64,000 nucleotides of DNA from Histomonas meleagridis 2922-C6/04-290x. Lineage: Eukaryota; Protista; Parabasalia. Below, one piece after another: positions 1,314 through 63,265 of the stretch. The notes beneath the pieces were generated by a model, which made no database searches, was not told the DNA's origin, and saw only the letters and a program-made list of their open reading frames with translations. The DNA lies in contig JAANOX010000097.1 in NCBI GenBank assembly GCA_020184695.1, forward strand, positions 1 to 64,000, read 5' to 3'. The position numbers and the translations under genes were made by a program. Each line of letters opens with the position of its first letter. The stretch's first letter is position 1.

Positions 1314-4040
1314 ATGCCTAATAATGATGCTACCACAAATACAGAAGATAAAAATTCGAATAATCTATCAACCAGCTTGAAATTCTTAATCGAGCTTGAG
1401 AAAACTATATTCAGTTTAACCGAAGAAAACATTCAGCCTTCCATTAAAAAAGTATTAAAATTATTTGATTCAAATAATCCCTATACATTTAATACGATTA
1501 TAAGTAGCATCGTTTATAATGCATTTTCATCACCAAAGCATTTATTTGATATTTACTTAAATTTTTTAAAAACACTTCAATCTAAAGAAGAAGAAATTAA
1601 TCAAAGTGACGTTAAACTAATTTCAATTTTTGTCAAACGTATATCTACAAAGAACGCACAAGAATCATATTATTTAATCGAGAAACTAATTGAACAAAAT
1701 TTAATTGATAAAAATATCACAAAAAATATTAATTCAAAATATTTTGCTCATTATAAAATAGAAGAAGAAAACCAAAATCAAACACACAGAGCATTTGGTC
1801 CAATCGTAAAATACTTTATGGATCATTATGAAGAGCTATCAAAGAATGATTGGAAACTTCATAAGCAATTAATTAAAGAAGGAGTTAATCCTAATGAAAT
1901 TTCGAAAATAATTCGAAATGATGAAATTGAAAAACTTCAAGAAATATCATCACTAACAAATTTTGATTTTAATCAAATAATTGAACCATCACTTTATGAA
2001 AGGTGTTCATTTATTAATCAAAAGAATGTTACATTAATTGATTATGCAGCATTTTTTGGATCTGTTAAATGTTTTAAATATTTACTTATGAATGGTGCAA
2101 ATGTAATAAATACAGGTAAATATGCAGTTGCAGGTGGAAATCTTGAAATTATTCATTTGTGTGAACAAAACAATTCATCATTTGAAGATGCATATGAAAC
2201 AGCAATTAAGTTCCATCAAAATGATATCTTTATCTATCTTTATGAAAATAAATTAGAAAAAATACAATCAATACCGAAAATGTCTGAAGATAAAACTAAT
2301 GATTTAGTAAGTTTTTGTATTGAGAAAGATAATTATAAAATTTTAACATTTTTGGAAGAAAAAGGAATTAATGTTAATGCTAATAATATAAACCAATCAT
2401 CAAGAAATGGAAATTTATATCTCGTTAAATATTTCCTTAAAAATAGTCAAATTCCAAAAAATATTTTGCCATATGCTTCAGAATCAGGAAATATCGAACT
2501 TGTGAAATATGTTTTAGAACAAGAAGGAATTGATGTTAATGCAAAATATATTCATTTAAATATTTTGGAATATGTTTTAATAATTTATAATAAGTTTTAA
2601 TGATTTGGAATATGTTTTAATAATTTGAAACAGCACTTCATATAGCAGTTAAAAATAATAATATAGAAATAGTAAAATTACTTTTAGATAAAGGAATTGA
2701 TGTTAATGCAAAAACTATTCATTTGAATAATTTTGGATATGTTTTAATAATTTAGAATATGTTTTAATAATTTTATATATGTTTTAATAATTTGAAATAT
2801 GTTTAAATAACCTGAAACAGCACTTCATATAGCAGTTAGAAATAATAATATAGAAATAGTAAAATTACTTTTAGATAAAGAAATTGATGTTAATGCAAAA
2901 AATATTCATTTTTATAATTTGAAATATGTTTTAATAATTTTATATATGTTTTAATAATTTGAAATATGTTTTAATCATTTGAAACAGCACTTCATATAGC
3001 AGTTAGAAATAATAATATTGAAATAGTAAAATTACTTTTAGATAAAGAAGGAATTGATGTTAATGCAAAAAATATTCATTTGATTAATTTTATATATGTT
3101 TTAATAATTTGGAATATGTTTTAATAATTTGAAATATGTTTTAATAATTTGAAATATGTTTTAATAATTTGAAACAGCACTTCATATAGCAGTTAGAAAT
3201 AATAATATTGAAATAGTAAAATTACTTTTAGATAAAGAAGGAATTGATGTTAATGCAAAAAATATTCATTTGATTAATTTTATATATGTTTTAATAATTT
3301 GGAATATGTTTTAATAATATTATTTATGTTTTAATAATTTTGGATATTTTTTAATAATTTGGAATATGTTTTAATAATTTGAAATATGTTTTAATAATAT
3401 TATTTATGTTTTAATAATTTTGGATATTTTTTAATAATTTGGAATATGTTTTAATAATTTGAAATATGTTTTAATAATTTGAAACATCACTTCATATAGC
3501 AGTTAGAAATCATAATATTGAAATAGTAAAATTACTTTTAGAACAAAAAGGAATTGATGTCAATGCAAAAAGTATTTATTCGAATAATTTAGAATATGTT
3601 TTAATAATTTTATATATGTTTTAATAATTTGGAATATGTTTAAATAATTTGAAATATGTTTAAATAATTTGGAATATGTTTTAATAATCTGAAATATGTT
3701 TTAACAATATTTGACTGCAATTCAAATTGCACAACAAAAAGGTTACACAGAAATAGTAATTTTACTTCTTGGAAAAAGTACAAACGAAAATTCCAATTCA
3801 GACTCTTCTTCTATAAACATCAAATCTTCATTTTCAATAAGATATGGAAATAAAGCATATATTACGAATGATCAAAATCAACTCGAAGATCAAATGTTCA
3901 CAGAAAACAATAAAAAGAAAAGTATCAAAAGTGTTGATGTAAACACTCAAACATATGAAAATCATCAAAATCACAATATACATTATAACAAATATATTCA
4001 CAAAGCAAAACGAAAATACATCAATACTTTAATATTATGA
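1314..4040 (+). CDS. DUF3447-type ankyrin repeat protein; C-terminal repeats split by 17-nt+codon arrays
   Basis: ORF 1314-2600 has DYAAFFGSVKCFKYLLMNGA and AVAGGNLEIIHLCEQ. Stop-free ankyrin cassettes lie at 2630-2716, 2817-2903, 2984-3073, 3174-3263 and 3484-3573, with a terminal segment 3714-4040 (TAIQIAQQKGYTEIV). Confidence 0.75.
2550..3713 (+). repeat. 20-nt minisatellite (ATATGTTTTAATAATTT-NNN) confined to the spacers between ankyrin cassettes
   Basis: Spacers measure 80, 100, 80, 100, 220 and 140 nt, i.e. 4, 5, 4, 5, 11 and 7 units of 20 nt. Confidence 0.9.
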
Positions 4041-10839: not shown

Positions 10840-12162
10840 ATGAAATAAACGGTTTCAGGCTGGAGCCAACAACAATTGGAAACAGAAAAATCAATTTTTT
10901 TTCGGAGAATTCCCGAAATATTTGAAGATGAATATAATGAAGACGAGCTGAGAACACGTTTGAAACTTCTTTTACAAGGAGATTCATCACAAATACCATA
11001 TTTTGATCAATTCTTCTTCTTACCAGAAAATCGATCTTTATCACGTTGCCAATCTATTGAACAGCTTTTTCAATTTGTTCTTGCATTGTTTTATAATCCT
11101 GAAGATTTACAACTTACTTATCAATCCTTATGTGTTTTTGATCGTCTCTTTTCTTTTCCAAAATTAGATCTAAGCTTTATCGGGAACGACATGTTTTTTA
11201 TGCGTTGTATTACACTTATGTCAAATCCCATTAAAGAACTTGCTCAAGTATCATTAAATACATTAACAAATTTTATTGACGATTACAGAGTTTTTTTCCG
11301 GCGAGCATCTGAACTTGGATTTGTTGAACATATTCCTGATGTATTAATCCAAAACAATTCTTTATATGATGAAAATATTATCCAAAAGAACATTTTAACA
11401 ATATCTTATTCATTGATCAAACTCGAACCGCTTTTATTTTCTCCAGAACAAATGGCTATATTTTGGAATTTATCTCTTGCAATAATTCAATCAAATCCTT
11501 TGAACAAATACATTCGACATGAATTTACTGTGATGCAACGTCTTGTTCGGCATGGTTTCAAACCATGTATAGATGAGGGGCTAGCTAACCTAATTTTGTT
11601 GCTTACCGATTCACCAGGAAAAGTTCTTGATTTTATGTTTTCATTCCTTTGCAGTCTTTCCGAAAGGGAAACCGTTTTCAACTGGCTTTTTGATAACGGT
11701 TTCTTCTATCGTTTGTTAAATCGAACTGCCAACGAACCAGAAATCGGGTGTTATGTATTTAAGCTTCTGAATGCTCTCCCGTTTGTTCCTGACCAGATCA
11801 ATCCAATCCTTGAGTTGATTATGATGACACTCCAAAATGGAAATTTTCAAACAAAGATATCATGTATGAAGTATATTCATACTGTGATTGTTGAGAAACC
11901 TGAATGCATATCGGAATTACTCGGAGCAGGAATTTTGGTAAAGATTGCTGAAATTCTTGAAGTTAAAGATCCATCTTACGTTACCGAATGTTTGGATATT
12001 TTGTTGAAAATGTTTCCTCTGATTGAAGCAGCAAACATTGATGTCGCAAGCATACCGGGGTCAATAGAGCTGTACGATGTGTTACTGGAATTGATGGATG
12101 AAAGCACAGATTTTTTGCAAAATAAGTTAGAAAATTTGATTTCTTATTTCCCAGAAAACTAA
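10840..12162 (+). CDS. Armadillo/importin-alpha-like helical repeat protein; start unresolved
   Basis: Leu-rich ARM-like repeats (LNTLTNF, AGILVKIAEILE..D). The only nearby in-frame ATG (10840) is followed by AAA TAA; the track start at 10876 is TTG. Confidence 0.6.
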
Positions 12163-12746
12163 TAAACTTATTTCAAAATATTTTTTATATATTATCATGT
12201 TATGACATATTAAATATTAAATATGGGTCAATAGTGTATGAGGAATTATTCTAATCATTAAAATGTTTTCATGTGATTAATATATTATCCTTTTAGTAAC
12301 AGTTGTTATTTTTTCTTACGCATGATTCTCTAAAAAATCATTTTAATACTTTCTTTATTATGTAGCATATTTTATAATGATGAAAAATAATTTTTATTTC
12401 TTGGTAGAACAAATAAAAAATTTTCTATGAAGTATTGGTTTTATTTGATCAATGAAGAAATTCAAAGAAAGCCTATACTTAACATTTAATAAATCATTAA
12501 ATAAAAATGAATTTTCGATACAACATATTCACCTAAACAGAAAATCTAAAATGATTTTTTTGTTCTCATGCAACATCATTTAAATCATTTTTTGAAGAAC
12601 GCATTCATGTTCATCTGATAGAATAACATATTGATATACAATTCAAAAATTTTATTCGCGAATATTTACGGTAAATCAAAACCATTTTCATTAAAGATTT
12701 CAAATTTCGTATTTTTTATTTTTGACAAATCAAGAAACAACCAAAA

Positions 12747-14421
12747 TCACTGTAACAAGTACAGCAGCGTATCCTGCATTGCCTTTGCTAATCCCTTTGT
12801 CAACACCAGATGTTCCTTCAACTGTTCCTTACTTTTCTCGAATATTTCTTCTTTTGGCTGATTATTTGATTCCAACTGCGCAATTATTATATCTGACAAA
12901 CCAATTCTTTCGAGGGAGTGATGCGATTTCGAAAACATGTCAATAGTTTCGATGCTATTTTCAAAGAAATTAATTCGAAGTTCGATTGCTTTCACAGATT
13001 CTTCATGAAATTCATTCAGTAATCTAATTAATGTCTCAATCATTGGTTTAACTTTAGTATATATTAAGTTCTGTGCGAGTAAAAGCGTTCGTTTTTTGTC
13101 GTCATTAATTTCAATGTTTTCGACCTCTGGGAAAACATTCATTATTTGATTCTTCTCATTTTCTAACTTTTGTTGTTCTTCAAGGATTCTATCAATGCAG
13201 AAGTTAGCAAACTTTTTCTGATTTTCTTCCGAACTTTCGCTTAATCGTTTTTGTAACCTTTCAATTGCCATGTTGCAAAATATTTTCCATTCTTCATTAT
13301 CTTTATCAAGTGCTTTGCTAAACATTTCTTTGTCTTCTGCGATTAGTGTCTTAAATAATAAGTCAAGTAATTTCATTCGTTTAGATTTAATTGTTTCTAC
13401 AATGCGCTTGGCTAATGATACAGCTTTCGCAAACGAAACATATTGTAAACGAATTTCATTAACGACGTTTGTTAATGAGTTTTTCTTGAAAACAATTTCT
13501 TTCGAGTTTATTCTTTCTCGAAGTAAATAACTTGTCTTCTCTTTAACCTCAGAGACAGAATCAGATAAATCCGAAATTTGAAGTTGGAGTTGATCGTCTT
13601 CGTTATCAAAAGGTGGATTTGAACACTTGTACTGAAAAAGTGACGATAGAGTTGATGGGGGGACTTGTGATGTGTCGACATCATCAACGTTTGCGCCACA
13701 CATGATAAGGAGAGAGACAGTACGACTATCTTTCTTTAAAAGAGCAATCTCGAGAATGCTCAGGAATTTGTCTTTAACATCTTTGGCGGGTTCTGAGAGG
13801 TTGACAATGAGATTAGGATCAGCACCTTTGCTTAGAAGAAAAGATGTCACATCAAAATGACAATACTCAATAGAGGCATATAATGGTGGAAGATGTGGTT
13901 GAATAGCAGTGAGTGGTGAGTTATATTCAATTAGTAATTTCACAAATTCAAGATGCCCAAGTGATGCGGCATGATATAAATGAAGTTGAAATATATTTAA
14001 AAAACCCCTTCAACAAACATTTGGACATTGGCTTTGTTTTCAAGTAATACTTTTCCAAATTCTAAAAGATTTTTCCGAATTGCAAGTAAAAGAGGTGTTT
14101 GACCTTTTTTCGAAAGCTCATTCACGTCGCAGCCATACTTGATTAACGTTTTAAGTGATTCTAGTTGTTGAAAAGTAACGGCTGAATGAATGAGATATTG
14201 TTTTTGACACCCTTTTTCAAGAAGAAGTGAAAGAGAATCAATACTTCCATTTTCTACGCAATGCCTTGCAAGAGTTTTAAATGAAAAAAATAAACTTTAA
14301 AAATAATAATTGAACATTAAAAAAAATATATAAACAAAAAAACAATAAAATGAACGGCTTTGTCTATGTTTCCACTGTTATTGATGTAGTTAGTAACAAA
14401 TTCCAAGTCTGTTGAGAACAT
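12747..14421 (-). CDS. Ankyrin repeat plus coiled-coil protein, interrupted by five 17-nt elements
   Basis: ATG at 14421 gives MFSTDLEFVTNYINNSGNIDKA; then 4x(17 nt+codon) at 14355-14276; then TLARHCVENGSID...KKGQTPLLLAIRKN...VEG; a 17-mer at 14005-13989; then QLHLYHAASLGHLEFVKLLIEY joining ORF 12747-13943. Confidence 0.75.
14276..14355 (-). other. Array of four 17-nt intervening elements with single-codon micro-exons
   Basis: GTTCATTTTATTGTTTT ttt GTTTATATATTTTTTTT aat GTTCAATTATTATTTTT aaa GTTTATTTTTTTCATTT aaa. Confidence 0.75.
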
Positions 14422-14619
14422 TTCGTTCCAATTTAATGTGGACCGTTAATAAGATTTATTCTTCTTGACCGTTAATGATGTGCAAGATTTATTTTGCCTT
14501 TAAACATGTAGAAAAATTTGGCTGAATATGTAAAACCTGAATCATCATCACTAAAACTTTTTTTTTTAAAATTATAATTGAATTCAAAAATCAAATTTGA
14601 AAATATTAAGAAAAAAAAT

Positions 14620-15117
14620 TTATTCGTTGCTAATGTTCAGACCGCGTAAAAAAGCTTCACATCCTTCAACAATATCATTATATGTTGCATCGAAATTTCC
14701 ACTGTACCACGGATCAGAAATGTCTCTAGAACTTCCAGCAAATTCTAGCAACTTGTGTATTTTGTGTTTTGGATCACCACCAGTAATCTTTTGCATATTT
14801 CTAATATTAAGACTATCCATTCCTATAAGATAATCATACTTTTCATAGTCTTTTTTGGTCATCTGTACAGATGTGTGAGGTACCACAGGAATACCAACTT
14901 GGCGTAATTTGTTTACTGTTCCATAATGTGGTGGATTTCCAATTTCTTCTCTACTGGTGGCAGCAGAAGCTATTTTAAATTTAGATTCCAGTCCTCTTTG
15001 TTTTACCATATGAGTGAAAACACTTTCACACATTGTGCTTCGACAAATGTTCCCATGACACACGAATAAAACTCGGATCATATTTTGGTTTGACCATTCC
15101 AGTTTTTGAATAGCCAT
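14620..15117 (-). CDS. Low-molecular-weight protein-tyrosine phosphatase, bacterial type
   Basis: VLFVCHGNICRS P-loop, DYLIGMD, DPWY; alternative start at 15081. Confidence 0.93.
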   Translation of the reverse strand: MAIQKLEWSNQNMIRVLFVCHGNICRSTMCESVFTHMVKQRGLESKFKIASAATSREEIGNPPHYGTVNKLRQVGIPVVPHTSVQMTKKDYEKYDYLIGMDSLNIRNMQKITGGDPKHKIHKLLEFAGSSRDISDPWYSGNFDATYNDIVEGCEAFLRGLNISNE

Positions 15118-15155
15118 ACAATTGGATTGAATTGTATAAACATTTTGAATATAGA

Positions 15156-15166
15156 GACCGTTTAAA
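15156..15166 (-). promoter_or_regulatory. GACCGTTTAAA Myb-site-like promoter motif
   Basis: 39 nt upstream of ATG 15117; identical 11-mer at 30016 and 51017. Confidence 0.6.
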
Positions 15167-15683
15167 TATTAAAATGATTTTATTGTTATCTTCTTGCTCA
15201 AATACATAAGGAAAATGAAATTTTATAAACTCAATAATGGCCTTATCAAATAATTTCAATTAAGTTCAATTATATGATATATGATTATGATCATTGATTG
15301 ACAAATTTTTATTTTGATAGAAAATATTTAAAACTTTTTTTCTGAAATCAATGATAAACTTAGTAAAACCCAGTATTTTATAATATTTATTTTGTTCGTT
15401 TGCAAATCAGTCCCCCAAAGTTCTAAAGTTTCGGTTTGACTAATCGAATTGACAAGGTTTATTTGACGTTTAAAATGCTTACCAAAAAAAACTTCTCAAT
15501 TATCATTAATGGTTTCATTGAAATATCAGAAACTGCTTGGCAAAAATTTTCCTGCTGTTCAACAGACACAGCTTTTTGAATATGGATAGTGTATTTAAAT
15601 GGTTTATTTTTGCTTACCCATTTTTAACACTGAAGCAATTCACTGAAGTAAACACCACAATTTCAAGTTAAACTGCCAACAAG

Positions 15684-18600
15684 ATGCAAGGTAATGGGGC
15701 AGTAACTAATGCAATTTCATCACTCAAAACATTTTGCTCAAAAATACATCCAATCTGCTCACCCATTACATTTAAAGAAAAATATGCTCATCCTTTTTCA
15801 AATGGGATTGCATACATTATTTCAAATTTTTCTGGAACACCTATTAACATCGGCCAAGTTTTTAATGAAGTAGTAGATAGTGGATTTAAACAGAAAAACC
15901 AAAATTTATATTTATTACTTGTATGTCAATATATAAAACGTTTTTCAGCTCTAAACCCAAAAAAAGTTAACATAAAAGGGAAAAAGAAATTTTTAAATGA
16001 AGTTCTTAGCTTTTTAGTTGTTGATGAAATCCAATCAAAAATATCAAATGATACAATTTTTGAATTTTCTGATACACTATCTGAATTTATGTGCACTTTC
16101 CCAAAAACAGTCAGTCATATATTAGGATTTTTCATTAAGACATCTTTAGTTAAATCATTTTTAACATTAATTTCAAATTTATCCTTACCTAAAAATATTA
16201 CTGAAGCTGATGCAAAGCTCCTTATTGAACTCTTTGAGAAGAACATGTCAAATAAACTTATTTCTCCCACAATATCAATATTTTTCATTAAATCTTTCAT
16301 AAACCCATCACTTAGCCCATACCTTAGTCAATCCGAAATTCCACTGTGCAAATTTATCTATAAATTACATAAAAATGAATTTGACTCAGAATATATTATG
16401 ACACATGTTTCAGATCTAAATGCTAAAGGACCATGTCTTTTACTTTCTAACGCTTACTTTCAAAAGCTTTATGCTCAAAATAAGGAAAAATGTCTTTCTG
16501 AGCTCATTCAATTTTTCACAATAATTTCACCGACAAATGTTTCTGAAATCAAGACAATTCAAGCAACTCTTGATCTCATTGATGACCCAAATTTCTTTGT
16601 AAAATATATTGTTGGCAAGAAACTTGATCTAAATATCATTCTTTTCTATCTAAATAAATTTAATGATCACAGTAAACTTATTCCACAAGAAAATAACAAA
16701 GCCATTCTTGTTGTTCAAACTCTTACAAAACTTTTAATTTCTAATTTACATCATAATAATCTATCTCCATTTTTCCGATATCTTAATGAATGTCTCATAT
16801 TTATAAAATCCGATGCTAAGCCAGCCGAAGAAAATGATGCCAAAGCTCTAGTTGCCTTTCTATCAAGCCCAACAGCTGAAGATGAGCCATTTGTTCCATA
16901 CAGCAAAATTGAGAGGCTCTGTTTGTATTCTTTTTTAAACGCATCACCGAGCACCCGTTTAAATGGGTATCAAACTCTTACATCGCTTGGCGACTTATTT
17001 AAAATCGAAAATCCAGATTGGAATAACTATGAACCATCAGCACAACCATTTATACAACAATTTGATTCTGATTGTAATTTTTTCATCAAATCAAATTCCA
17101 CCAAAATCTATTCTATTGAAGAACTTCTTCAAACTAATTCAACATTATTAAAAGCCATATCATTTTTAGGCAAGAAACTTCCAGTTAAACGACAAAAATT
17201 TGCATTGCATATCATCAAAGAATGTATACAATATGGAAAACGATGTCCATATTTAATGCCATTACTTGCTAGTATCCTTGATGAGAAGCTTGTTACCAAA
17301 TCTAAGCAAACATTAGATTCCATTTTTGATTATATCAAATCTTCTGGTAATTTAAGTTCATTACAATTTTTATCAGAAGAACTTCTTAAGTATTACTTCG
17401 GCAAAGAATATATTAAAACGATTTCGATATTCGAGAACTTAACAATTGGAATTTTAAATAACATTAAAACTATATCAACAGAAATAATCAACTTACAAAT
17501 TGAAACATTCGAATATATCTTTAAGAACAATGACTTAACACAACTTACGCAAATCATTAATGACATTGCTGATGAAATCCAACTCAAAACAGATTATGAG
17601 CCTACTCCATTTATATATAAATTACCAAAATTAATATTAAAGAAGTTAATCAAGAAGCCACAGCCACAACAAACGCCAATTAATTCACATATAATATATT
17701 CATTTAATCAAATAGCTAAAGTTATAATCGATAAAAACCCGAAAATTAAAATCGACATCTATAAAATGTCTGCGATTATATCGCCGAGCTTTACCTTAAA
17801 TGTAATTTTAGATGAAACATTTGACTTTTCGATGTGCGTTTTATGTTATATGTTAGAAGAGAACAAAGAAAAATGTTTCACTAAGTTCCAAAGCATATGT
17901 AAAGCTAAAGATATAACATTAGAGAAGCCAATAAGTAATAATGAAGTTATTAAACGAATGAATGAACATCAGAAGTTTGCGTTATATGGATTAGTAATAC
18001 AAATGTTTAAATATATGCGAAATATCATTAATTTGTTAAATGTATTAACATTAATATTAGAAAATAACAATGAATTGTTACGTAATAATTATAATGAATT
18101 GTTGGAAATGTTTATTGATATAACAAAGTTAATACCATTAAATTGTCAGTCATATCAAAAGTTCTTTAATATATTATATAAAGAAGAAGAATTAATGTTA
18201 CAAAACATAAATTTGTTCTTAAACAATTGGCGTAATGATTATTTAGAGTTACCACAACTAATTAAAATATTTTCGAAATTCATTTCTAACCAAGATATAC
18301 GCTCATATGTATTAAACTTAATTGCTAGAAAAAGAAACAACTTGATTTTCGGATTTTATCATATCTTTAAAACATTAAAACTTCATAACTTTTCAAGAAT
18401 ACTTTTAACAATTTATTTTAGACAAATTTTCGACACGCCGATTAAAATCAATTTAATTAAGTTTTACGATATGAATTCTATCGTCAAGGAGCTGATCGAA
18501 TGCATAGAAAATTGTAAGTCCATTGAAGAATATCCAATTTTGTTTAAGGTCATGGAAAATATTCTATTAAATGACGTTAATAATAATCAGAGCCTATCGT

Positions 18601-22220: not shown

Positions 22221-25200
22221 ATGAAACATTCAACTCTAAAAATTCCACAACAGATTGATTTTGGATTTTGTCCTGTTGGCGAAACCACTTCCCAGGAGAT
22301 TACGGTCACAAATTTAAGTCGTGATTCGACAACATTTATTTGGCTATCGAAAGATCCATTTAAAATCAGTCCACAACATGGAACAATTTTAGGGAAAAAG
22401 CAACAACAATTTCGAGTTGATTTTTTACCTGATATTGCCACACGATTTAACGGTACTCTAGTATGTCGTTATGGAACTGAATTACTTGAAAAGTCCATTA
22501 TCGAAGTAAATGGGATCTCCAAAATTCCACACATAACACTTAGTACCAATTTTATTGATTTTGGACGAATTCCAAGCTCAGCTAAATCTATACAAACTAT
22601 CACAGTTCATAACTCAGCACCTGTCCCAGCTACAGTGACAATAACATCCGATTTCCCTCAGTTCATAGTCCAGCCCACAGTTATCCATTTGAAGCCAGAG
22701 GGAAGTTCGCTCGTCAAAATCTTATTTCATCCGACAAACTTTGATTTCTTCGCCTTTGCGAACATTACTTTTAGTACTGCTGGTGGTAACTCAGCTACGA
22801 CTCGATGTAGGGCGTATGTAACAGGGCCAACAGTTACAATTGATCGAACTACATTATCATTAGGGAGTGTTCATTTGAAATCAACATCATCAAATATATT
22901 CAACATCTCAAATCATTCTGATCGACGAATATTGTTCCAATTCTTAATAGAGCCAACGTCAGTGTTCCGATTTGATCCAATTCAAGGAATTCTTCCACCT
23001 AATTATTCCAAAGCTATTCGTGTTACTTTTTCGCCACAACATCCAATAGTTTATCATAGGCGTGTTATTCTTGTTATACATCAACATCATCCAATGGCTA
23101 TTGATGTTTTTGGTAGTGCATTTGATACATTTAATCATCCTCCAAAAATTAAAACTTCAAGTGTTGAAAAATATTACCAAGCGATTGCACAAGGGCTTGG
23201 GTCTAAACCTCCAAGAGCTATAAAAGAATTTACTCCAATTCAAATCCCTGAAATTGATTACATATCAAATGACTTGAAAAGAAACTTATGTACCTTAAAC
23301 TCTGGAGTACATATTTTTGATGAGCTTTTCATCCAGAAAGATTTGGTCACAATCTCACCAAACCATTTCGACTTCGGCGCTTGTCAAAGAGATATTTCAC
23401 CTGAGCCAAAGACGTTGACCGTTAAGAACAACACCGATAGCGCGCTGACACTTTTTTGGGAAAAGAACAGCGACGGTTTTGTAAATGTCGAGCCTGAAAT
23501 CTCAGAAATCCCAAAGAATCAAAAAGTTGATATCATTGTTAAGTTTAATCCATTGCTAGAGTTTCAATTCATGGGTACTATGTTAGAAGGTTTTGCCCAA
23601 TTTAAGGAAATGCGGAATTCAAATATTGTCAATTTCATAACATTACCATTTGTATTAACACCGTTTTGTAATGGCCATACAATGGATGATGTTACCTCAT
23701 TCATACCGACAATGTATACATCACATAAAACATTAATATTTTCAGGCGCAATAATTGGCGACTCCAAATACCAAACATTTTATGTCGAGAATCGCGGCGA
23801 TTGTGCGTTTAAATTTGATATCCGTATTATAGATCCAGAGAAACCAGATAAAGATTCGTTGAATTCATCTTCAACAGCGTTTAATGTATATCCACGAATA
23901 GGCACAATCGACAAAGGGTCATTCCAAATCTTTGTTGTCAAGTTTAATCCAACACAAAAAGGACATTATCATTCACAGATATTTGCAACGATAAATGATT
24001 CACCATTAAATTTCTTTAACTTAAACTTAAAAGGTGATTCATCAATTCCAACCATCAAATATTCAGTCAACGGGACATTATTTTTACATCCGATATCATT
24101 AGGATCATTTTCTAATCAAATCATCCAAATATTTAATGAGTCAACAATACCAATTAAAATCGAATGGAAAATACCAACAATATATAATCGATTATTAATG
24201 GTCAAACCAAATTCGATTGAGGTTCGTTCTAAAGAAGTCATTGATTGTGAATGGATCTTTCATCCGAATACAATTGGTGAATTTAAAGCAGAAGTAATAT
24301 GTAATGTTCAATCATTAGTTAATTCATCGAATACATATATATCAAAAGACTTTTTACCATTTATCATTGGTAAAGAGAATATTCATATTGAGAATTCATT
24401 AATGAATACATTAAAAAGTGTTCAACATTATCCATTAACGATTTCAACATTAGTCACTGATTGTATCATTGATTCCAAACCTAAAGAAATTGATTTTGGT
24501 TATGTTCGAATTAATTCTATTTCTTCTTCTACTTTAATCATTACAAATCATAGTGATTCACAAATGAAATTCGTATTAAGGACTAAATCCAGAAATTCGA
24601 AAATTGTTATGTTTAATCCTTCGAAAGATATATTACCAGCACGTTCATCACGAGAAATAGAAATTCGATTCCAACCAAATAGTTCCGGATTAATTACTGA
24701 TTCTATTATGTGTTCATTAATATATGAATCACTTTATCAAGAAACAGAACAAATGCAATCGAAAGCAAATGAAATATGTCTTGTAAAAGGTATTGGATGT
24801 TTTCCACATTTATCTATCATTGATATTTTTTCGACGAAATATTCACGTAATAATTCATGGATTAATTGTAACATTAATTTGATTAATGAAGAATTAAATA
24901 TATTAAAATGTGATTCATTAGTCAATAAATTAAAAACATTTGAAATCGACTTCGGTTCATATATAATAAACTCAAAGCCAACAACATATTATATCTGTTT
25001 TAAAAATGTCGGTCATATTTCATTTAATTTCTCAATTAATTTCCCAAATGATATTAATATTGATCCGGAATATTGGGCGTTACCTGATGAGATTGATAAT
25101 GACAAACTTAAACAAGATCAAATCATTCAAGCGAAGTTATTTAAAGTGAATATGAAGAAATTCTTTTTAAATCCAAATGAAACAATTACTTTACAATTAA

Positions 25201-26708
25201 CTTATTATCATAAATATATCGAATGTCATCAATTACCAATAATATTATCAATACAAAACGGAAGAATTATAAAGTTATTACTTAAAGGGAAAACTTTAAA
25301 TAAAACAAATCCTTATTTAATTCCACAATATAAATACTTCGAATTCCAACAAATGCCTATTGGATCTTTATCACCTCCAATACAAACATTAAAAATTAAT
25401 AACTTTTCAAACTTAGATGCAAATTATCAAATAGATTTAACACAAGTTAATGAATTAAATGAAAATAATCATAACTTCGAAATAATTAAATGTTTAAATC
25501 CTTTCGGTATCATCAAAAGGAAAACGTCGATTTTAATTAAATGGATTTTTAAGCCTTTAGAAGCGAAAGAATATGAAGCGCCAATATTAGTTACATGTGA
25601 AAATGGTAATAACTTTACTGTAAACTTAAAAGGAAAAGGTATTCATACCGATTATGATGAATATATCATTAATTGGCCAATTTTCCCTCCGAATTCTTTA
25701 AGTATACAAAACGTTTCTCCAATAATTTTAAGTGAACAATTTATAAATTTCGGTGATATACCAATTTTTGTGAGCACAAATAAAATTATTTATATGCAAA
25801 ACATTAGTGATAAATCGTATGAATTTATCATCAACAACAACAAACAAAATTCAAATATGTTAAAATTGGAACCTAAAAATGGTATAATTGAAGCTGGCGA
25901 AAAGTTGAAATTAATTTTGAAAGTTAATTCGCCAAATGTTCCTTTAATTAGTTTCAACACTATTCCAATAATATTTACTGAAATAAACAATGAAAATGAA
26001 ATAGATGAAAATGTTAATAACGAAGAAGTTGTCAATGAAGAAGAAGAAGAAGAATTTGTTGACGAAATTATCGCGATTGACCCTCCAATTAATAGTAATA
26101 ATCGGATTAATAACTTAAAAATGTTAAAGCAAAAAAGTGAAAATTGGGAGAGTGTAATCGATAGGACCTTCAAGAACTTGAAGAATAACACTTCGAGAGA
26201 AGCAAATTTGTTCTCTTCTCATATCGGAAAACGAGAAGAAAACGTTTTAGAAGATGAAAATCAAAATGTCATTTGCCAGTTCTGTCAGTTCATCGACGTC
26301 GTTTTTGACGCAATAACCGAAAATGACTATAGAAATGAGTTCGGTTCAGTTGACACTTTTTACTTTGATGTACAAAATCCGAAAAATGTCAACGAGAAAT
26401 ATAAAGATGAAATCGGAGGCCTGCTCATGAACGTGTTTAATGAAGCATTAGCTGACGAACAGTTAAGAAAGTACGCAATGAAAAATGCAGAGATTAGACA
26501 GAAAAACATTCCATACTTCCAACAGTTATATAAAGAAGACGAAAACGTTTCAGTGGAAAACGTGAAAGTGAATGAGACAAAAATAGCTGACGATGTGCAG
26601 TCATTCTTAAGGGATGTGATCGACGAAATTGTAGACGAGGCATGCGAAGGAAAGTTCTCTTTGGAAAACGAAATTGTCCAAATTAGCGGATTCAAAACAA
26701 ATAAATAA
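22221..26708 (+). CDS. CFAP65: Cilia/flagella-associated protein 65-like (multiple ASH/MSP Ig-like domains)
   Basis: Repeated IDFG..V.....I.N modules. YHRRVILVIHQHHPMAIDVFG and EGFAQFKEMRN...FCNGH resemble conserved CFAP65 blocks as recalled, not searched. Confidence 0.72.
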   Translation: MKHSTLKIPQQIDFGFCPVGETTSQEITVTNLSRDSTTFIWLSKDPFKISPQHGTILGKKQQQFRVDFLPDIATRFNGTLVCRYGTELLEKSIIEVNGISKIPHITLSTNFIDFGRIPSSAKSIQTITVHNSAPVPATVTITSDFPQFIVQPTVIHLKPEGSSLVKILFHPTNFDFFAFANITFSTAGGNSATTRCRAYVTGPTVTIDRTTLSLGSVHLKSTSSNIFNISNHSDRRILFQFLIEPTSVFRFDPIQGILPPNYSKAIRVTFSPQHPIVYHRRVILVIHQHHPMAIDVFGSAFDTFNHPPKIKTSSVEKYYQAIAQGLGSKPPRAIKEFTPIQIPEIDYISNDLKRNLCTLNSGVHIFDELFIQKDLVTISPNHFDFGACQRDISPEPKTLTVKNNTDSALTLFWEKNSDGFVNVEPEISEIPKNQKVDIIVKFNPLLEFQFMGTMLEGFAQFKEMRNSNIVNFITLPFVLTPFCNGHTMDDVTSFIPTMYTSHKTLIFSGAIIGDSKYQTFYVENRGDCAFKFDIRIIDPEKPDKDSLNSSSTAFNVYPRIGTIDKGSFQIFVVKFNPTQKGHYHSQIFATINDSPLNFFNLNLKGDSSIPTIKYSVNGTLFLHPISLGSFSNQIIQIFNESTIPIKIEWKIPTIYNRLLMVKPNSIEVRSKEVIDCEWIFHPNTIGEFKAEVICNVQSLVNSSNTYISKDFLPFIIGKENIHIENSLMNTLKSVQHYPLTISTLVTDCIIDSKPKEIDFGYVRINSISSSTLIITNHSDSQMKFVLRTKSRNSKIVMFNPSKDILPARSSREIEIRFQPNSSGLITDSIMCSLIYESLYQETEQMQSKANEICLVKGIGCFPHLSIIDIFSTKYSRNNSWINCNINLINEELNILKCDSLVNKLKTFEIDFGSYIINSKPTTYYICFKNVGHISFNFSINFPNDINIDPEYWALPDEIDNDKLKQDQIIQAKLFKVNMKKFFLNPNETITLQLTYYHKYIECHQLPIILSIQNGRIIKLLLKGKTLNKTNPYLIPQYKYFEFQQMPIGSLSPPIQTLKINNFSNLDANYQIDLTQVNELNENNHNFEIIKCLNPFGIIKRKTSILIKWIFKPLEAKEYEAPILVTCENGNNFTVNLKGKGIHTDYDEYIINWPIFPPNSLSIQNVSPIILSEQFINFGDIPIFVSTNKIIYMQNISDKSYEFIINNNKQNSNMLKLEPKNGIIEAGEKLKLILKVNSPNVPLISFNTIPIIFTEINNENEIDENVNNEEVVNEEEEEEFVDEIIAIDPPINSNNRINNLKMLKQKSENWESVIDRTFKNLKNNTSREANLFSSHIGKREENVLEDENQNVICQFCQFIDVVFDAITENDYRNEFGSVDTFYFDVQNPKNVNEKYKDEIGGLLMNVFNEALADEQLRKYAMKNAEIRQKNIPYFQQLYKEDENVSVENVKVNETKIADDVQSFLRDVIDEIVDEACEGKFSLENEIVQISGFKTNK

Positions 26709-27261: not shown

Positions 27262-27333
27262 TGTCTCCGGGCAGGATCGAACTGCCGTCAAGAGCGTGTT
27301 AAACTCCTATTCTAACCATTAGACTACGGAGAC
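27262..27333 (-). tRNA. tRNA-Val(AAC)
   Basis: GTCTCCG TA GTCT AATGGTTA GAAT A GGAGT TT-AAC-AC GCTCT TGAC GGCAG TTCGATC CTGCC CGGAGAC A folds as a cloverleaf. Confidence 0.93.
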
Positions 27334-43483: not shown

Positions 43484-46290
43484 ATGATCACCAATGGAAA
43501 CCAAGAAAACGAACCTTTGCATATGTTAAAAACTCTCCAAAATATCACATTAAACATGAACGAAAGAAGCAAGTTGAGTGATCTTCAAATGACCTTAGAT
43601 CTTTTTAATACTAATTTACCAATTTCTTTTAATTTTGTCTTTGTCATTCTGTTTATTCATCTTTTGTTTCTAGGATGAAAGACTTCAATATTTATTTTGA
43701 ATTTTTGCAGGCAGTTGAAGCAAAAGAAAAAGAATTATTTAAAAATGATTACAATATTTTTGATATTTTTTCACATATTCTTCTTATCAAAACAACGCAA
43801 GAAGCAGATTATCTTTTAGAAAAACTCTATGAGAAAAATATTATTAGTGATGAAATTCTTAAAGGCAAAATGTCATTTTATTTTGCACAATACAAAACTT
43901 TAGATGAGCTCAAAAATTGTCTTGTTCAACCTTATTCAAAACGGTTTTTTGAAAAATATGAAGAACTATCAAAGAATAATTTTGAACTTCATAAGCAACT
44001 AATTAAAGAAGGTGTTAATCCAAATGAAATTGCGAAAATGATGATTAAGAAAAACTTCAAGAAATATCATCACGAGATAATTTTAATTTTAATCAAATAA
44101 TTGAACCATCACTTTATGAACGATGTTCATTCGTTAACCAAGAAAATGTTGCATTAATTAATTATGCAGCATTTTTTGGATCAGTTAAATGTTTTAAATA
44201 TTTACTTATGAATGGTGCTAAAATAGATAATACAGGTAAATATGCAATTGCTGGAGGAAACATAGAGATAGTTCATATATGTGAACAAAATCATTCATCA
44301 TTTGAATATGCAGATTTACCAGCAATTGAATTCCATCGCTATGATATTATGCAATATGTTCATGAAAACGAAATTTTAGACACAAGATCTTGTGTATATA
44401 CTGGAAGAGAATGTATCATCCATAATAACTATGAACTTTTCACATATTTCAAAGATAAAGGAATGGAAAGCGATGATTCTTTTATTAATGAAGCAGCAAA
44501 GAATGGAAATATATTTCTTGTTCAATACTTTAATGAAGAAGTTCAAATACCAAATGAAGCTTTAGTGTCAGCTTCAAAATCAGGTAATTTAGAATTAGTT
44601 AAATATCTTATAACACAAAAGAAAATCAATGTAAATGTTAAAGATATTAAATATTTATATTTAATGTTAATTCCGTGGAAAATGGATTTATTTAAAATAA
44701 TTGATTTTTATTGTTATTGTTTAATACAGCACTTATAGTTGCATCTGAATATGGGAATATTGAATTAGTTAAATTTCTTCTCGAGCAAGAAGAAATTAAT
44801 GTTAATGCAAGAAATGTTTTTTAGTTATGTTTAAAATATCTTTCTAAAATTTGGTGTATTTTAATGATGTATGGAATTAATTGAGATCATTTAAAACAGC
44901 ACTTATTTGGGCATCACAACATAATAATATTGAGATATTCAAAATGCTTATTGAACAAAATGATATTTATGTTAACACAAGCGATATTTACCAAACTTTT
45001 TTACTGTTTATCTGAATGAATTAGATTTCATTTTGATATTTTTATACTGCAATTATGGATCATTTGAAACAGCACTTATCTATGCATCTTTAAATGACAG
45101 CATAGAAATAGTTAAATTACTTCTTGAACAAAAAGGAATTGATATTAATGCTAAAACTATTTATTTGTTTTATTTAAAATTTATTTTAATAATTTAATGT
45201 TTCTAAATAATATTTGGAAATTATTTAAAATATTTAAAACAGCACTTATGAAAGCATCTTGTAAAGGTTATACAAAAATAGCTAAATTACTTCTTGAACA
45301 AGAAGGAATTGATATTAATGCTAAAACTATTTATTTGTTTTATTTAATATTTATTATAATAATTTTGGGATATTTCATAATATTATTTGGAAATTATTTG
45401 AATTATTTTGGACAGCACTTATGTATGCATCTTGGAAAGGGAATATATATATAGTTAAATTACTTCTTGAACATAAAGGAGTTGATATTAATGTTAAAGA
45501 TATTTATTTGTTTTATTTAATATTTATTTTAATAATTTTCTATTTCAAAATAATATTTGGAAATTATTTAAATTATTTTGGACAGCACTTATGATGGCAT
45601 CTGAAAATGGTCATACAGAAATAGTTAAATTACTTCTTGAGCAAGAAGGAATTGATATTAATGCTAAAAATATTCGTTTGTTTTATTTGATATTTATTTT
45701 GATAATTTCAGATTTCAAAATAATATTTGGAAATTATTTGAATTATTTGATACAGCACTTATTTGGGCATCTTCAACTGGTTGTACAGAAATAGTTAAAT
45801 TACTTCTTGAACATAAAGGAATTGATATTAATGCTAAAAATATTCATTTGTTTAATTTATTATTTTTTTATCTAATTTTATATTTCAAAATAATGTTTGG
45901 AAATTATTTAAATTATTTGATACAGCACTTGTGTATGCATCTGAATATGGTCATACAGAAATAGTTAAAGAACTTCTTGAGCAAGAAAATTGATATTAAT
46001 GCTAATACTATTTATTTGTTTTATTTAAAATATTTTTTAATAATTTGATGTTTCTAAATAATATTTGGAATTGATTTAAATTATATGAAAAAGCACTTAT
46101 TAAATCTTCTTCAAAAGGTTATATAGAAATTGTTAAATTACTTCTTAAACAAGAAGGAATTGATATTAATGTTAAAAATATTTATTTGTTTTATATAACA
46201 TTTAATAATGTAAAATTTCAAAAAAAATTTGGAATTTTTTTCATAAGTCGTTTAACAGCAATTAAAATATGTAGTGTCATTGATCAATGA
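43484..46290 (+). pseudogene. DUF3447-type ankyrin gene, paralogous to 1314-4040; split by 17-nt+codon arrays and carrying frameshifts
   Basis: Frameshifts at ~43645 (1 nt), ~44040 (~10-nt deletion) and ~45989 (2 nt). Nine 90-nt-type cassettes start at 44726, 44896, 45069, 45239, 45412, 45582, 45752, 45922 and 46090; the terminal TAI repeat starts at 46255. The lesions could be assembly errors. Confidence 0.65.
44646..46254 (+). other. Ten spacer arrays of 17-nt intervening elements with single-codon micro-exons
   Basis: Spacers of 80, 80, 83, 80, 83, 80, 80, 80, 80 and 75 nt; seven of the first nine place a Gly codon in the penultimate micro-exon. Confidence 0.75.
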
Positions 46291-62385: not shown

Positions 62386-63265
62386 ATGTCACAAATGAAT
62401 TCGTCTGCAGAATCGACTTGGGGACCCAATGATAATTTGGAAAATGTTCCTAATGGTATTATTAATTTTGGAAACACATGTTATCTTAATTGTTTTTTAC
62501 AGATGATATTACATCGTCCTCCAATTTCAGAAACTATCAAAAAAATACCTGCATCAGATTTTAGTTCTACATTTTCAATAAAATTCAAAAAATTATTTGA
62601 AACATTGAACAATGAAAAAGATCATTCAACTGAATTATCCGATATTATTAACACAATGTCAGAAGAGTTTTCGATTAAATTAAATAGTCAGCAGATTTCT
62701 TTGAAATTTTGGATTTAATTATTGAAAAACTCTTCAAATGAATCAAAAATTTATTCATCACTTCACTTTATTCTGTTGAAAGAACAAAAAAATTAAAAAC
62801 AAATACAACAAAAAATGATATTTTAGAAATTCCATTATGCCCGAATGGAAAAAGCAAAAAAAGTGTGAAATCATTATTGAAAGAATATTTTCACACAAAA
62901 AACATAACAGCAGAAAAAAAATTTATGAAACGAAATTAATCACAACTTATTCAATAATTCAATTACTTTCTATTGCACCTTTATATCAAAATTGTAATTT
63001 TGATAATGATCCTTTTAAAATTTATATAATACTTAAAATGTCTAAATTTAGTTTATATAATTTGAAAACAATAAAATTTGTTTTACGTGGAGTTATATAT
63101 CATTCAAATAATATTAACATAGGGCATTATACAATTTTACTCCTTATTAATCACAAATGGTACTATTTTAATGATGCGAGTGTAAAACATATCAATTCTT
63201 TAAATGACATTGATGATGATGAACTAACATTACCAAGTTCGATAAAATATGTATTGTTGGTTTAA
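62386..63265 (+). pseudogene. Ubiquitin-specific protease (peptidase C19) with frameshifts
   Basis: GIINFGNTCYLNCFLQ Cys box, QQ(D) box broken by a 1-nt deletion at ~62695, His box GHY...WYYFNDASV. Confidence 0.8.

Follow-up and report, generated by a model that had tools for sequence, protein, structure and literature searches.

An RNA-absent 17-nt element and a tandem array of 17-nt units in an ankyrin gene of Histomonas meleagridis

How is a protein read from a gene whose coding frame is broken, at the hairpin of an ankyrin repeat, by a spacer of 80 nt? This question is raised by an ankyrin gene on the minus strand of Histomonas meleagridis contig JAANOX010000097.1, of which a stretch of 64,000 nt (the window) was analysed. 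The genome of H. meleagridis, a parasite of turkeys, has a GC content of 28% and contains few introns (PMC8529796), with which the window agrees. A sequence-only reading of the window had proposed that the spacer consists of four 17-nt units, each removed separately and each leaving one codon behind, and that the 17-nt unit is general rather than the by-product of one tandem duplication. Our results partly supported this interpretation as a whole.

The gene extends from 14421 down to 12747. Exon 1 (14356–14421) contains the ATG at 14421 and 21 further codons, 22 in all, encoding MFSTDLEFVTNYINNSGNIDKA. Exon 2 (14006–14275) consists of 90 codons for two and a half ankyrin repeats (TLARHCVENG...QMFVEG), of which the last is GGG (14008–14006), and its first in-frame ATG is found only at codon 86. 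Exon 3 (12747–13988), with 413 codons and a stop (QLHLYHAASLGH...LLYLLQ), encodes ankyrin repeats and then a helical C-terminal domain, and is followed by a 3' UTR of about 50 nt, since RNA contigs end near 12697 and the stop lies at 12747. The 80-nt spacer separates exons 1 and 2. A solitary 17-nt element, GTTTTTTAAATATATTT (13989–14005), located 270 nt downstream of the spacer, separates exons 2 and 3 and links open reading frames of 97 and 413 codons. In a Pfam search, exon 2 matched Ank_2 at 8e-12 and exon 3 matched Ank at 1e-8, both above the gathering score, and no DUF3447 match was found in the gene. The gene also differs from the two DUF3447 genes of the window in its C-terminal domain, and so is no close paralogue of them, as had been claimed.

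The spacer (14355–14276) can be written as four 20-nt units at offsets 0, 20, 40, and 60, each a 17-mer followed by a triplet. In the order of transcription, these are element 1, GTTCATTTTATTGTTTT (14339–14355), delimited by pattern scan and by alignment with an orthologue, with the triplet TTT (F, 14336–14338); element 2, GTTTATATATTTTTTTT (14319–14335), with AAT (N, 14316–14318); element 3, GTTCAATTATTATTTTT (14299–14315), with AAA (K, 14296–14298); and element 4, GTTTATTTTTTTCATTT (14279–14295), with AAA (K, 14276–14278). After the fourth triplet the frame resumes at ACT CTT GCA. All four 17-mers begin with GTT(C/T)A and finish with TTT. The pattern GTTYA(N9)TTT(N3), repeated four times, gave a single match in the window and no match in 100 dinucleotide shuffles, so the exact 20-nt spacing noticed earlier was borne out, and Tandem Repeats Finder (TRF) likewise reported a repeat of period 20 at the array. 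A later hairpin of the same gene, NELSKKGQTPLL, has no interruption, again as described.

Reading frame alone does not fix the register of this array. When skip lengths were compared by dynamic programming, 14, 17, and 20 nt all restored the frame, so that 17+3 cannot be told in this way from 14+6 or 20+0; in addition, a permissive element pattern spuriously prolonged paths into intergenic DNA. Composition gave no signal for the register either, since the triplets TTT, AAT, AAA, and AAA are as AT-rich as the 17-mers. The statement that the codons F, N, K, K are kept therefore held as far as the in-frame join of the two open reading frames is concerned, while the exact junctions are drawn from comparison only. 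A single GT-AG intron across the spacer was also considered. The options ending in AG (61, 91, and 79 nt) broke the frame or met stop codons; a 71-nt GT..AG option (14335–14265) kept the frame, but gave a poorer fit to the ankyrin consensus and had no counterpart in the orthologue.

Four RNA runs were placed on positions 11900 to 15700 as assembled contigs, a form of data in which minor RNA forms are lost. Three of them, X3, X4, and X5, are libraries of one RNA study, and the RNA and DNA runs come from different studies. The RNA depth was zero at the intergenic stretches 12281–12661 and 15456–15700, and loose ends with poly(A) or poly(T) were found at gene ends, which indicates that the contigs represent RNA and not DNA. 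In the contigs of X3, X4, and X5, exactly 17 nt were missing at 13989–14005, at full contig depth and with the exons joined, whereas no other difference from the genome was seen over up to 2.65 kb. The RNA removed is GUUUUUUAAAUAUAUUU, which ends GU..UU. Its position is unambiguous: with GGG in front, CAA behind, and an element that begins with G and ends with T, the 17-nt deletion cannot be shifted. The DNA runs contained 100% of the sampled words of the region, and RNA run X3 missed only about 5, roughly the number that span the solitary 17-mer. These results show that excision of 17 nt from RNA is real and does not need an AG end. They uphold the proposal that the unit is general rather than the by-product of one duplication; the view of the 17-nt unit as a general, discrete entity is well supported, and the solitary element provides the first RNA evidence for it.

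The array behaved differently. The X3 contig (12698–15369) and the X4 contig (12698–14492) cover exon 1 and keep the whole 80-nt array, element 1 included, colinear with the genome, and no joint was reported inside the array in either. Removal of the four array units from RNA, as predicted by the earlier reading, was therefore not seen; the dominant assembled form is unspliced there, even though the solitary element is fully gone. Because contigs drop minor forms, spliced isoforms of the array are possible, but not as the dominant assembled form. In X5, the deepest library, the contig stops inside the array at 14299, the last nucleotide of element 3. Computed branch points of the k-mer graph for loss of a single unit are 14338, 14325, 14299, and 14278 for units 1 to 4, so the stop falls where it is predicted for loss of unit 3 by itself; the chance of such a coincidence is roughly 1 in 20, and the agreement is only a hint. 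From the sequence we infer that the four array units are excised, at best incompletely. The contigs also speak against a start downstream of the spacer, which the sequence-only reading had named as evidence against itself: X3 and X4 begin at 14492 at the least, and the orthologue shares the first exon.

The orthologue was found by a search with the C-terminal part of the protein, which gave one specific match with 39% identity, on metagenome contigs from several samples; three independent contigs were identical at the locus. The orthologous gene begins MLGSISTDLEFIKKYLAQGGNINEA and continues as GCA TTT [GTTTGTTTACTCCTCTT] AAT [GTTTTTTTAATTATTTT] AAT [GTTTATTTTCTTTTTTT] AAA ACA CTT (TLARYCAESG...), where the brackets enclose the 17-mers. 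A MAFFT alignment placed a single gap of 17 columns, corresponding to Histomonas unit 1, and left the remainder of the array free of gaps; GCA and TTT are contiguous in the orthologue, so that unit 1 is exactly absent. Its spacer of 63 nt contains an in-frame TAA, and exactly three 17-mers must go, against four in Histomonas. In both species a loop of four codons would then be left, FNNK in the relative and FNKK in Histomonas: TTT, AAT, and the last AAA are shared, and the third codon is AAT (N) instead of AAA (K). The solitary element is shared as well, since the orthologue has a 17-mer, GTTTATTTATTATTTAG, at the same codon. The discreteness of the unit, another part of the earlier proposal, is thus supported by a distant orthologue that keeps 17-nt units and differs by exactly one of them.

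The comparison further bears on what is selected. Between Histomonas and the relative, exon 1 is 52% identical, and exon 2 is 60% identical and 80% similar with 0 gaps, its differences being distributed 30/20/60 over the three codon positions. As judged from this alignment, exons 1 and 2 are under purifying selection at the protein level. Exon 2 lacks a start of its own: the first in-frame ATG is found at codon 86 in Histomonas and, in the relative, at codon 68. In both species, the reading frame must therefore continue across the array. The 17-mers have diverged: 47 of 68 positions are identical between the species (11/17 in the units orthologous to element 2, 14/17 in those orthologous to element 4), which is near chance for T-rich composition. 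Every unit shared by both species is nevertheless exactly 17 nt long although silent sites are saturated, which points to a constraint on length. We scanned JGI metagenome contigs for two sequences of the relative, the spliced junction and exon 2, and obtained no match, which indicates that its organism is absent from that collection.

The 17+3 design recurs in other genes, with the ankyrin glycine codon among the kept triplets. Two DUF3447 ankyrin genes on the plus strand of the window contain 36 elements (gene at about 1314–3960, arrays at 2550–3713) and 26 elements (gene at about 43675–46260, arrays at 44816–46090), respectively. Their 62 kept triplets include no stop codon and have a GC content of 36%, against 7% in the 17-mers. 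In the gene at about 43675–46260, the loops read NAK-T-K-N-G-K-TAL, NVK-D-N-S-G-W-TAL, and NAK-N-D-Q-G-D-TAL, always with the Gly codon two residues before Thr, as in the ankyrin hairpin consensus. Removal of the 17-mers gives ankyrin repeats of 34 aa, and removal of whole spacers repeats of 30 aa. Two metagenome relatives show the same arrangement, D-[17]-R-[17]-A-[17]-G-[17]-Y-TAL in L005 and D-[17]-H-[17]-D-[17]-G-[17]-S-TPL in L006. In the two DUF3447 genes, most elements begin with AT or AA, so a GT start, in which the earlier reading saw a hint of U1/U6-type 5' recognition, is not universal.

Several further observations were made on such inserts. In the gene at about 1314–3960, the 17-mer ATATGTTTTAATAATTT is near-invariant over about 30 copies (2550–3713, plus strand), while the kept triplet varies (GAA, GGA, TAT, TGG, AGA, ATA), the variation being concentrated in exactly the 3 nt required by the frame; one loop of this gene has 11 units. 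At 45139–45240 (plus strand), skipping 17 nt once leaves the remainder of each spacer free of stops in the frame that follows it (LFKIYFNNLMFLNNIWKLFKIFK). For the gene at about 43675–46260, a single element followed by a long hydrophobic loop is accordingly compatible with the frame, which alone does not exclude it. Only one other site in the window joins sizeable frames (141 and 47 codons) when a 17-mer is removed (ATAAAATATGTATTGTT, 63242–63258, plus strand); its composition is unlike that of the T-rich elements, and it may be due to chance. In Tritrichomonas musculus (L007:3765-3825), a T-rich, frame-shifting spacer of 50 nt that starts with GTTTTT lies at an ankyrin hairpin and is not divisible into 17+3 units. 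T. foetus (L009:4240-4860) has T-rich, GTTTTT-starting, frame-shifting spacers of about 55 to 250 nt at hairpin positions, and annotated Tritrichomonas ankyrin/DUF3447 proteins end inside such spacers.

On this evidence we consider it probable, though by no means assured, that the 80-nt spacer represents four separate 17-nt intervening elements of the same class as the solitary element, each with one retained codon. We strongly infer, from comparison of sequences, that the four units would be spliced to leave FNKK. They would be removed from the pre-mRNA one by one, giving ...NIDKA-FNKK-TLARH...; the predicted protein over the joined array would span NIDKAFNKKTLAR, and the tryptic peptide predicted over the solitary junction is ANVQMFVEGQLHLYHAASLGHLEFVK. 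With the boundary of unit 1 falling within a T run, the 3' cut would be set by distance from the 5' end, as by a 17-nt ruler, and not by AG. Removal from the tandem array may be slow or incomplete because neighbouring units lie just 3 nt apart, and this would explain the dominance of the fully unspliced form in the assembled RNA. Slow sequential removal and regulated retention would each account equally well for an array that persists in the main contigs.

Alternatively, the spacer could be removed otherwise than as four 17-mers, either as one larger piece (14355–14279, 77 nt, or all 80 nt) or with mixed outer boundaries, leaving a loop that varies or has fewer residues than FNKK. The frame survives any loss of 3n+2 nt, the array contigs contain no 17-nt joints, and the indivisible 50-nt hairpin interruption of T. 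musculus is a single piece. What makes this reading unlikely is that the orthologue differs by 17 and not by 20 nt while all four triplets are kept, that the unit length has stayed constant against saturated silent sites, and that excision of whole spacers leaves repeats four residues short. It would also make the coding-like GC content and the hairpin glycine of the paralogue triplets pointless.

Somewhat less likely still is that the array is never removed in Histomonas. Exon 1 would then belong to an upstream open reading frame of 34 codons, the gene would make no full-length protein or a shorter one from the internal Met at codon 86 of exon 2, and the array would be regulatory or decaying. 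Such a view agrees with the main contigs of X3 and X4, which retain the array while losing the solitary element fully, and with unit 1 being an extra insert relative to the orthologue. It is contradicted by the conservation of both exons as protein, gap-free and with a third-position bias in exon 2, and by the internal Met codons, whose positions differ between the species.

We regard it as very unlikely that the array stays in the mRNA and that the ribosome hops over each 17-mer during translation. Retention in the RNA contigs, a fixed length, and conserved kept codons would suit such a decoding rule; however, the solitary element, a member of the same class, is cut out of the RNA, no take-off and landing codon pairs or stimulatory structures were found, and four successive bypasses would be very inefficient. 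Least credible is an artefact, in which the 17-nt gap in RNA is a strain difference in DNA or an effect of assembly and the 20-nt period a neutral minisatellite in a dead gene: RNA and DNA do come from different studies and only contigs were available, but the gap is identical in three libraries, with no other difference over 2.65 kb, a distant relative has the same frame-breaking 17-mer at the same codon, and the exons are under purifying selection.

Returning to separate 17-nt elements, we considered what could remove them. A GT 5' end is present in every element of this gene and of its orthologue, and all of them (5/5 and 4/4, respectively) begin with GTT. An AG 3' end is absent from the gene, its solitary element and the four array units all ending in TTT; the solitary element of the orthologue is the only one that ends in TAG. 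The parabasalid branch/3' motif (ACTAACACACAG or TCTAA) is absent from all the elements; the window contains it about as often as expected by chance (3 matches, 3.1 expected), and never at an element. No bulge-helix-bulge was found at the solitary element, where the z-score of folding was −0.75 in Histomonas and −0.03 in the relative and pairing was not conserved, and RNA folding gave no structure within the 17-mer. Scanning the window with Rfam and for tRNAs revealed no snRNA or guide-like RNA, but only a tRNA-Val(AAC) gene (27262–27333, minus strand). With no AG, no ACTAAC-type branch motif, and no conserved fold, the elements point to no known machinery. The machinery would most likely be a short-intron pathway, strongly reduced, that goes back to the type B introns of trichomonads, which are T-rich and 23–25 nt long; an endonuclease-ligase route is possible. 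As a more tentative proposal, Histomonas and its relatives might possess a system dedicated to such excision from RNA, whether a non-spliceosomal one or a spliceosome that has been altered radically, which would cut out 17 nt precisely, counted from a weak (G/A)TT start, without needing AG or a branch motif and would act repeatedly on units 3 nt apart. Ankyrin hairpin loops would then be written codon by codon, and loop length would evolve in frame-neutral steps of 20 nt.

The closest likeness is to the type B spliceosomal introns of Trichomonas vaginalis and T. stableri, which are 23–25 nt long, 23 nt being the shortest reported in Trichomonas (PMC12316389). They occur in the same phylum, begin with GT, have a body that is largely poly-T, vary very little in length, and are found in genes for repeat proteins, including ankyrin and armadillo proteins; however, they end with AG, keep a (T)CTAA branch motif, and occur singly (PMC12316389). 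The Histomonas elements, in contrast, are 17 nt long, end with TT(T), contain no branch motif, start with GT, AT, or AA, and form arrays with 3 nt between units. Minimal introns of 15–16 nt in Stentor coeruleus and of 18–21 nt in the Bigelowiella natans nucleomorph are known (sizes cited in PMC12316389). These resemble the elements in being AT-rich and in having a near-fixed length close to the physical lower limit. Both have canonical GT..AG ends, a branch A, and exons of normal size. A single codon kept between two removed segments is also seen in the 3-nt micro-exons of animals (Drosophila homothorax; PMC7392893) and plants (PMC8831610). Those micro-exons are isolated, however, and flanked by ordinary long GT-AG introns. 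To our knowledge, they never occur in tandem runs of up to 11 single-codon exons.

Splicing without a spliceosome is carried out by the tRNA/bulge-helix-bulge endonuclease with a ligase, or by IRE1 on HAC1/XBP1. It resembles the present case in its short introns (11–26 nt class) and non-GT-AG ends, but depends on a bulge-helix-bulge or on paired stem-loops, whereas folding around the solitary element and its orthologue gave nothing significant or conserved. In programmed translational bypassing, known from T4 gene 60 and from the mitochondrial 'byps' of Magnusiomyces, short non-coding inserts likewise break an open reading frame without canonical splice signals; bypassed inserts remain in the mRNA, whereas the solitary 17-mer is absent from it. 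The literature that we searched contained nothing on 17-nt elements or on runs of single-codon exons in parabasalids. The precise loss of the solitary insert from RNA suggests that the 17-nt inserts are extremely short introns of a kind not yet described, which lack the usual AG. Should the arrays be processed in the proposed way, this non-AG class would occur in tandem with single-codon exons; the usual choice of 3' site and exon definition could not work there, so no current splicing model would explain the arrays, and they would make it practicable to study how a 3' cut site is chosen by distance.

Annotation of these genes is affected. The protein nearest to the ankyrin gene product in the databases is an NCBI model of H. 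meleagridis (P0001, 481 aa, window positions 13820–15117, minus strand), in which an upstream low-molecular-weight (LMW) phosphotyrosine phosphatase runs on into the C-terminal portion encoded by the ankyrin gene. In RNA, a contig has the phosphatase mRNA ending in poly(A) at 14604; the two genes are therefore separate, and the model has wrongly fused them. A search of protein collections for spliced products returned only this mis-joined model and proteins cut off at arrays, and a separate LMW phosphatase product was not on record in them. Published gene models thus truncate or mis-join such genes in Histomonas, and probably in Tritrichomonas, and as a consequence the annotation is wrong for a large family of ankyrin genes in a poultry pathogen. 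Elsewhere in the region, X3 has a 2-nt deletion at 15294, in an intergenic repeat (15271–15294), which X4 lacks and which probably reflects microsatellite variation between cultures or an effect of assembly. The window also contains, at 22221–26708 on the plus strand, an intronless gene for a CFAP65-like flagellar protein of 1495 aa.
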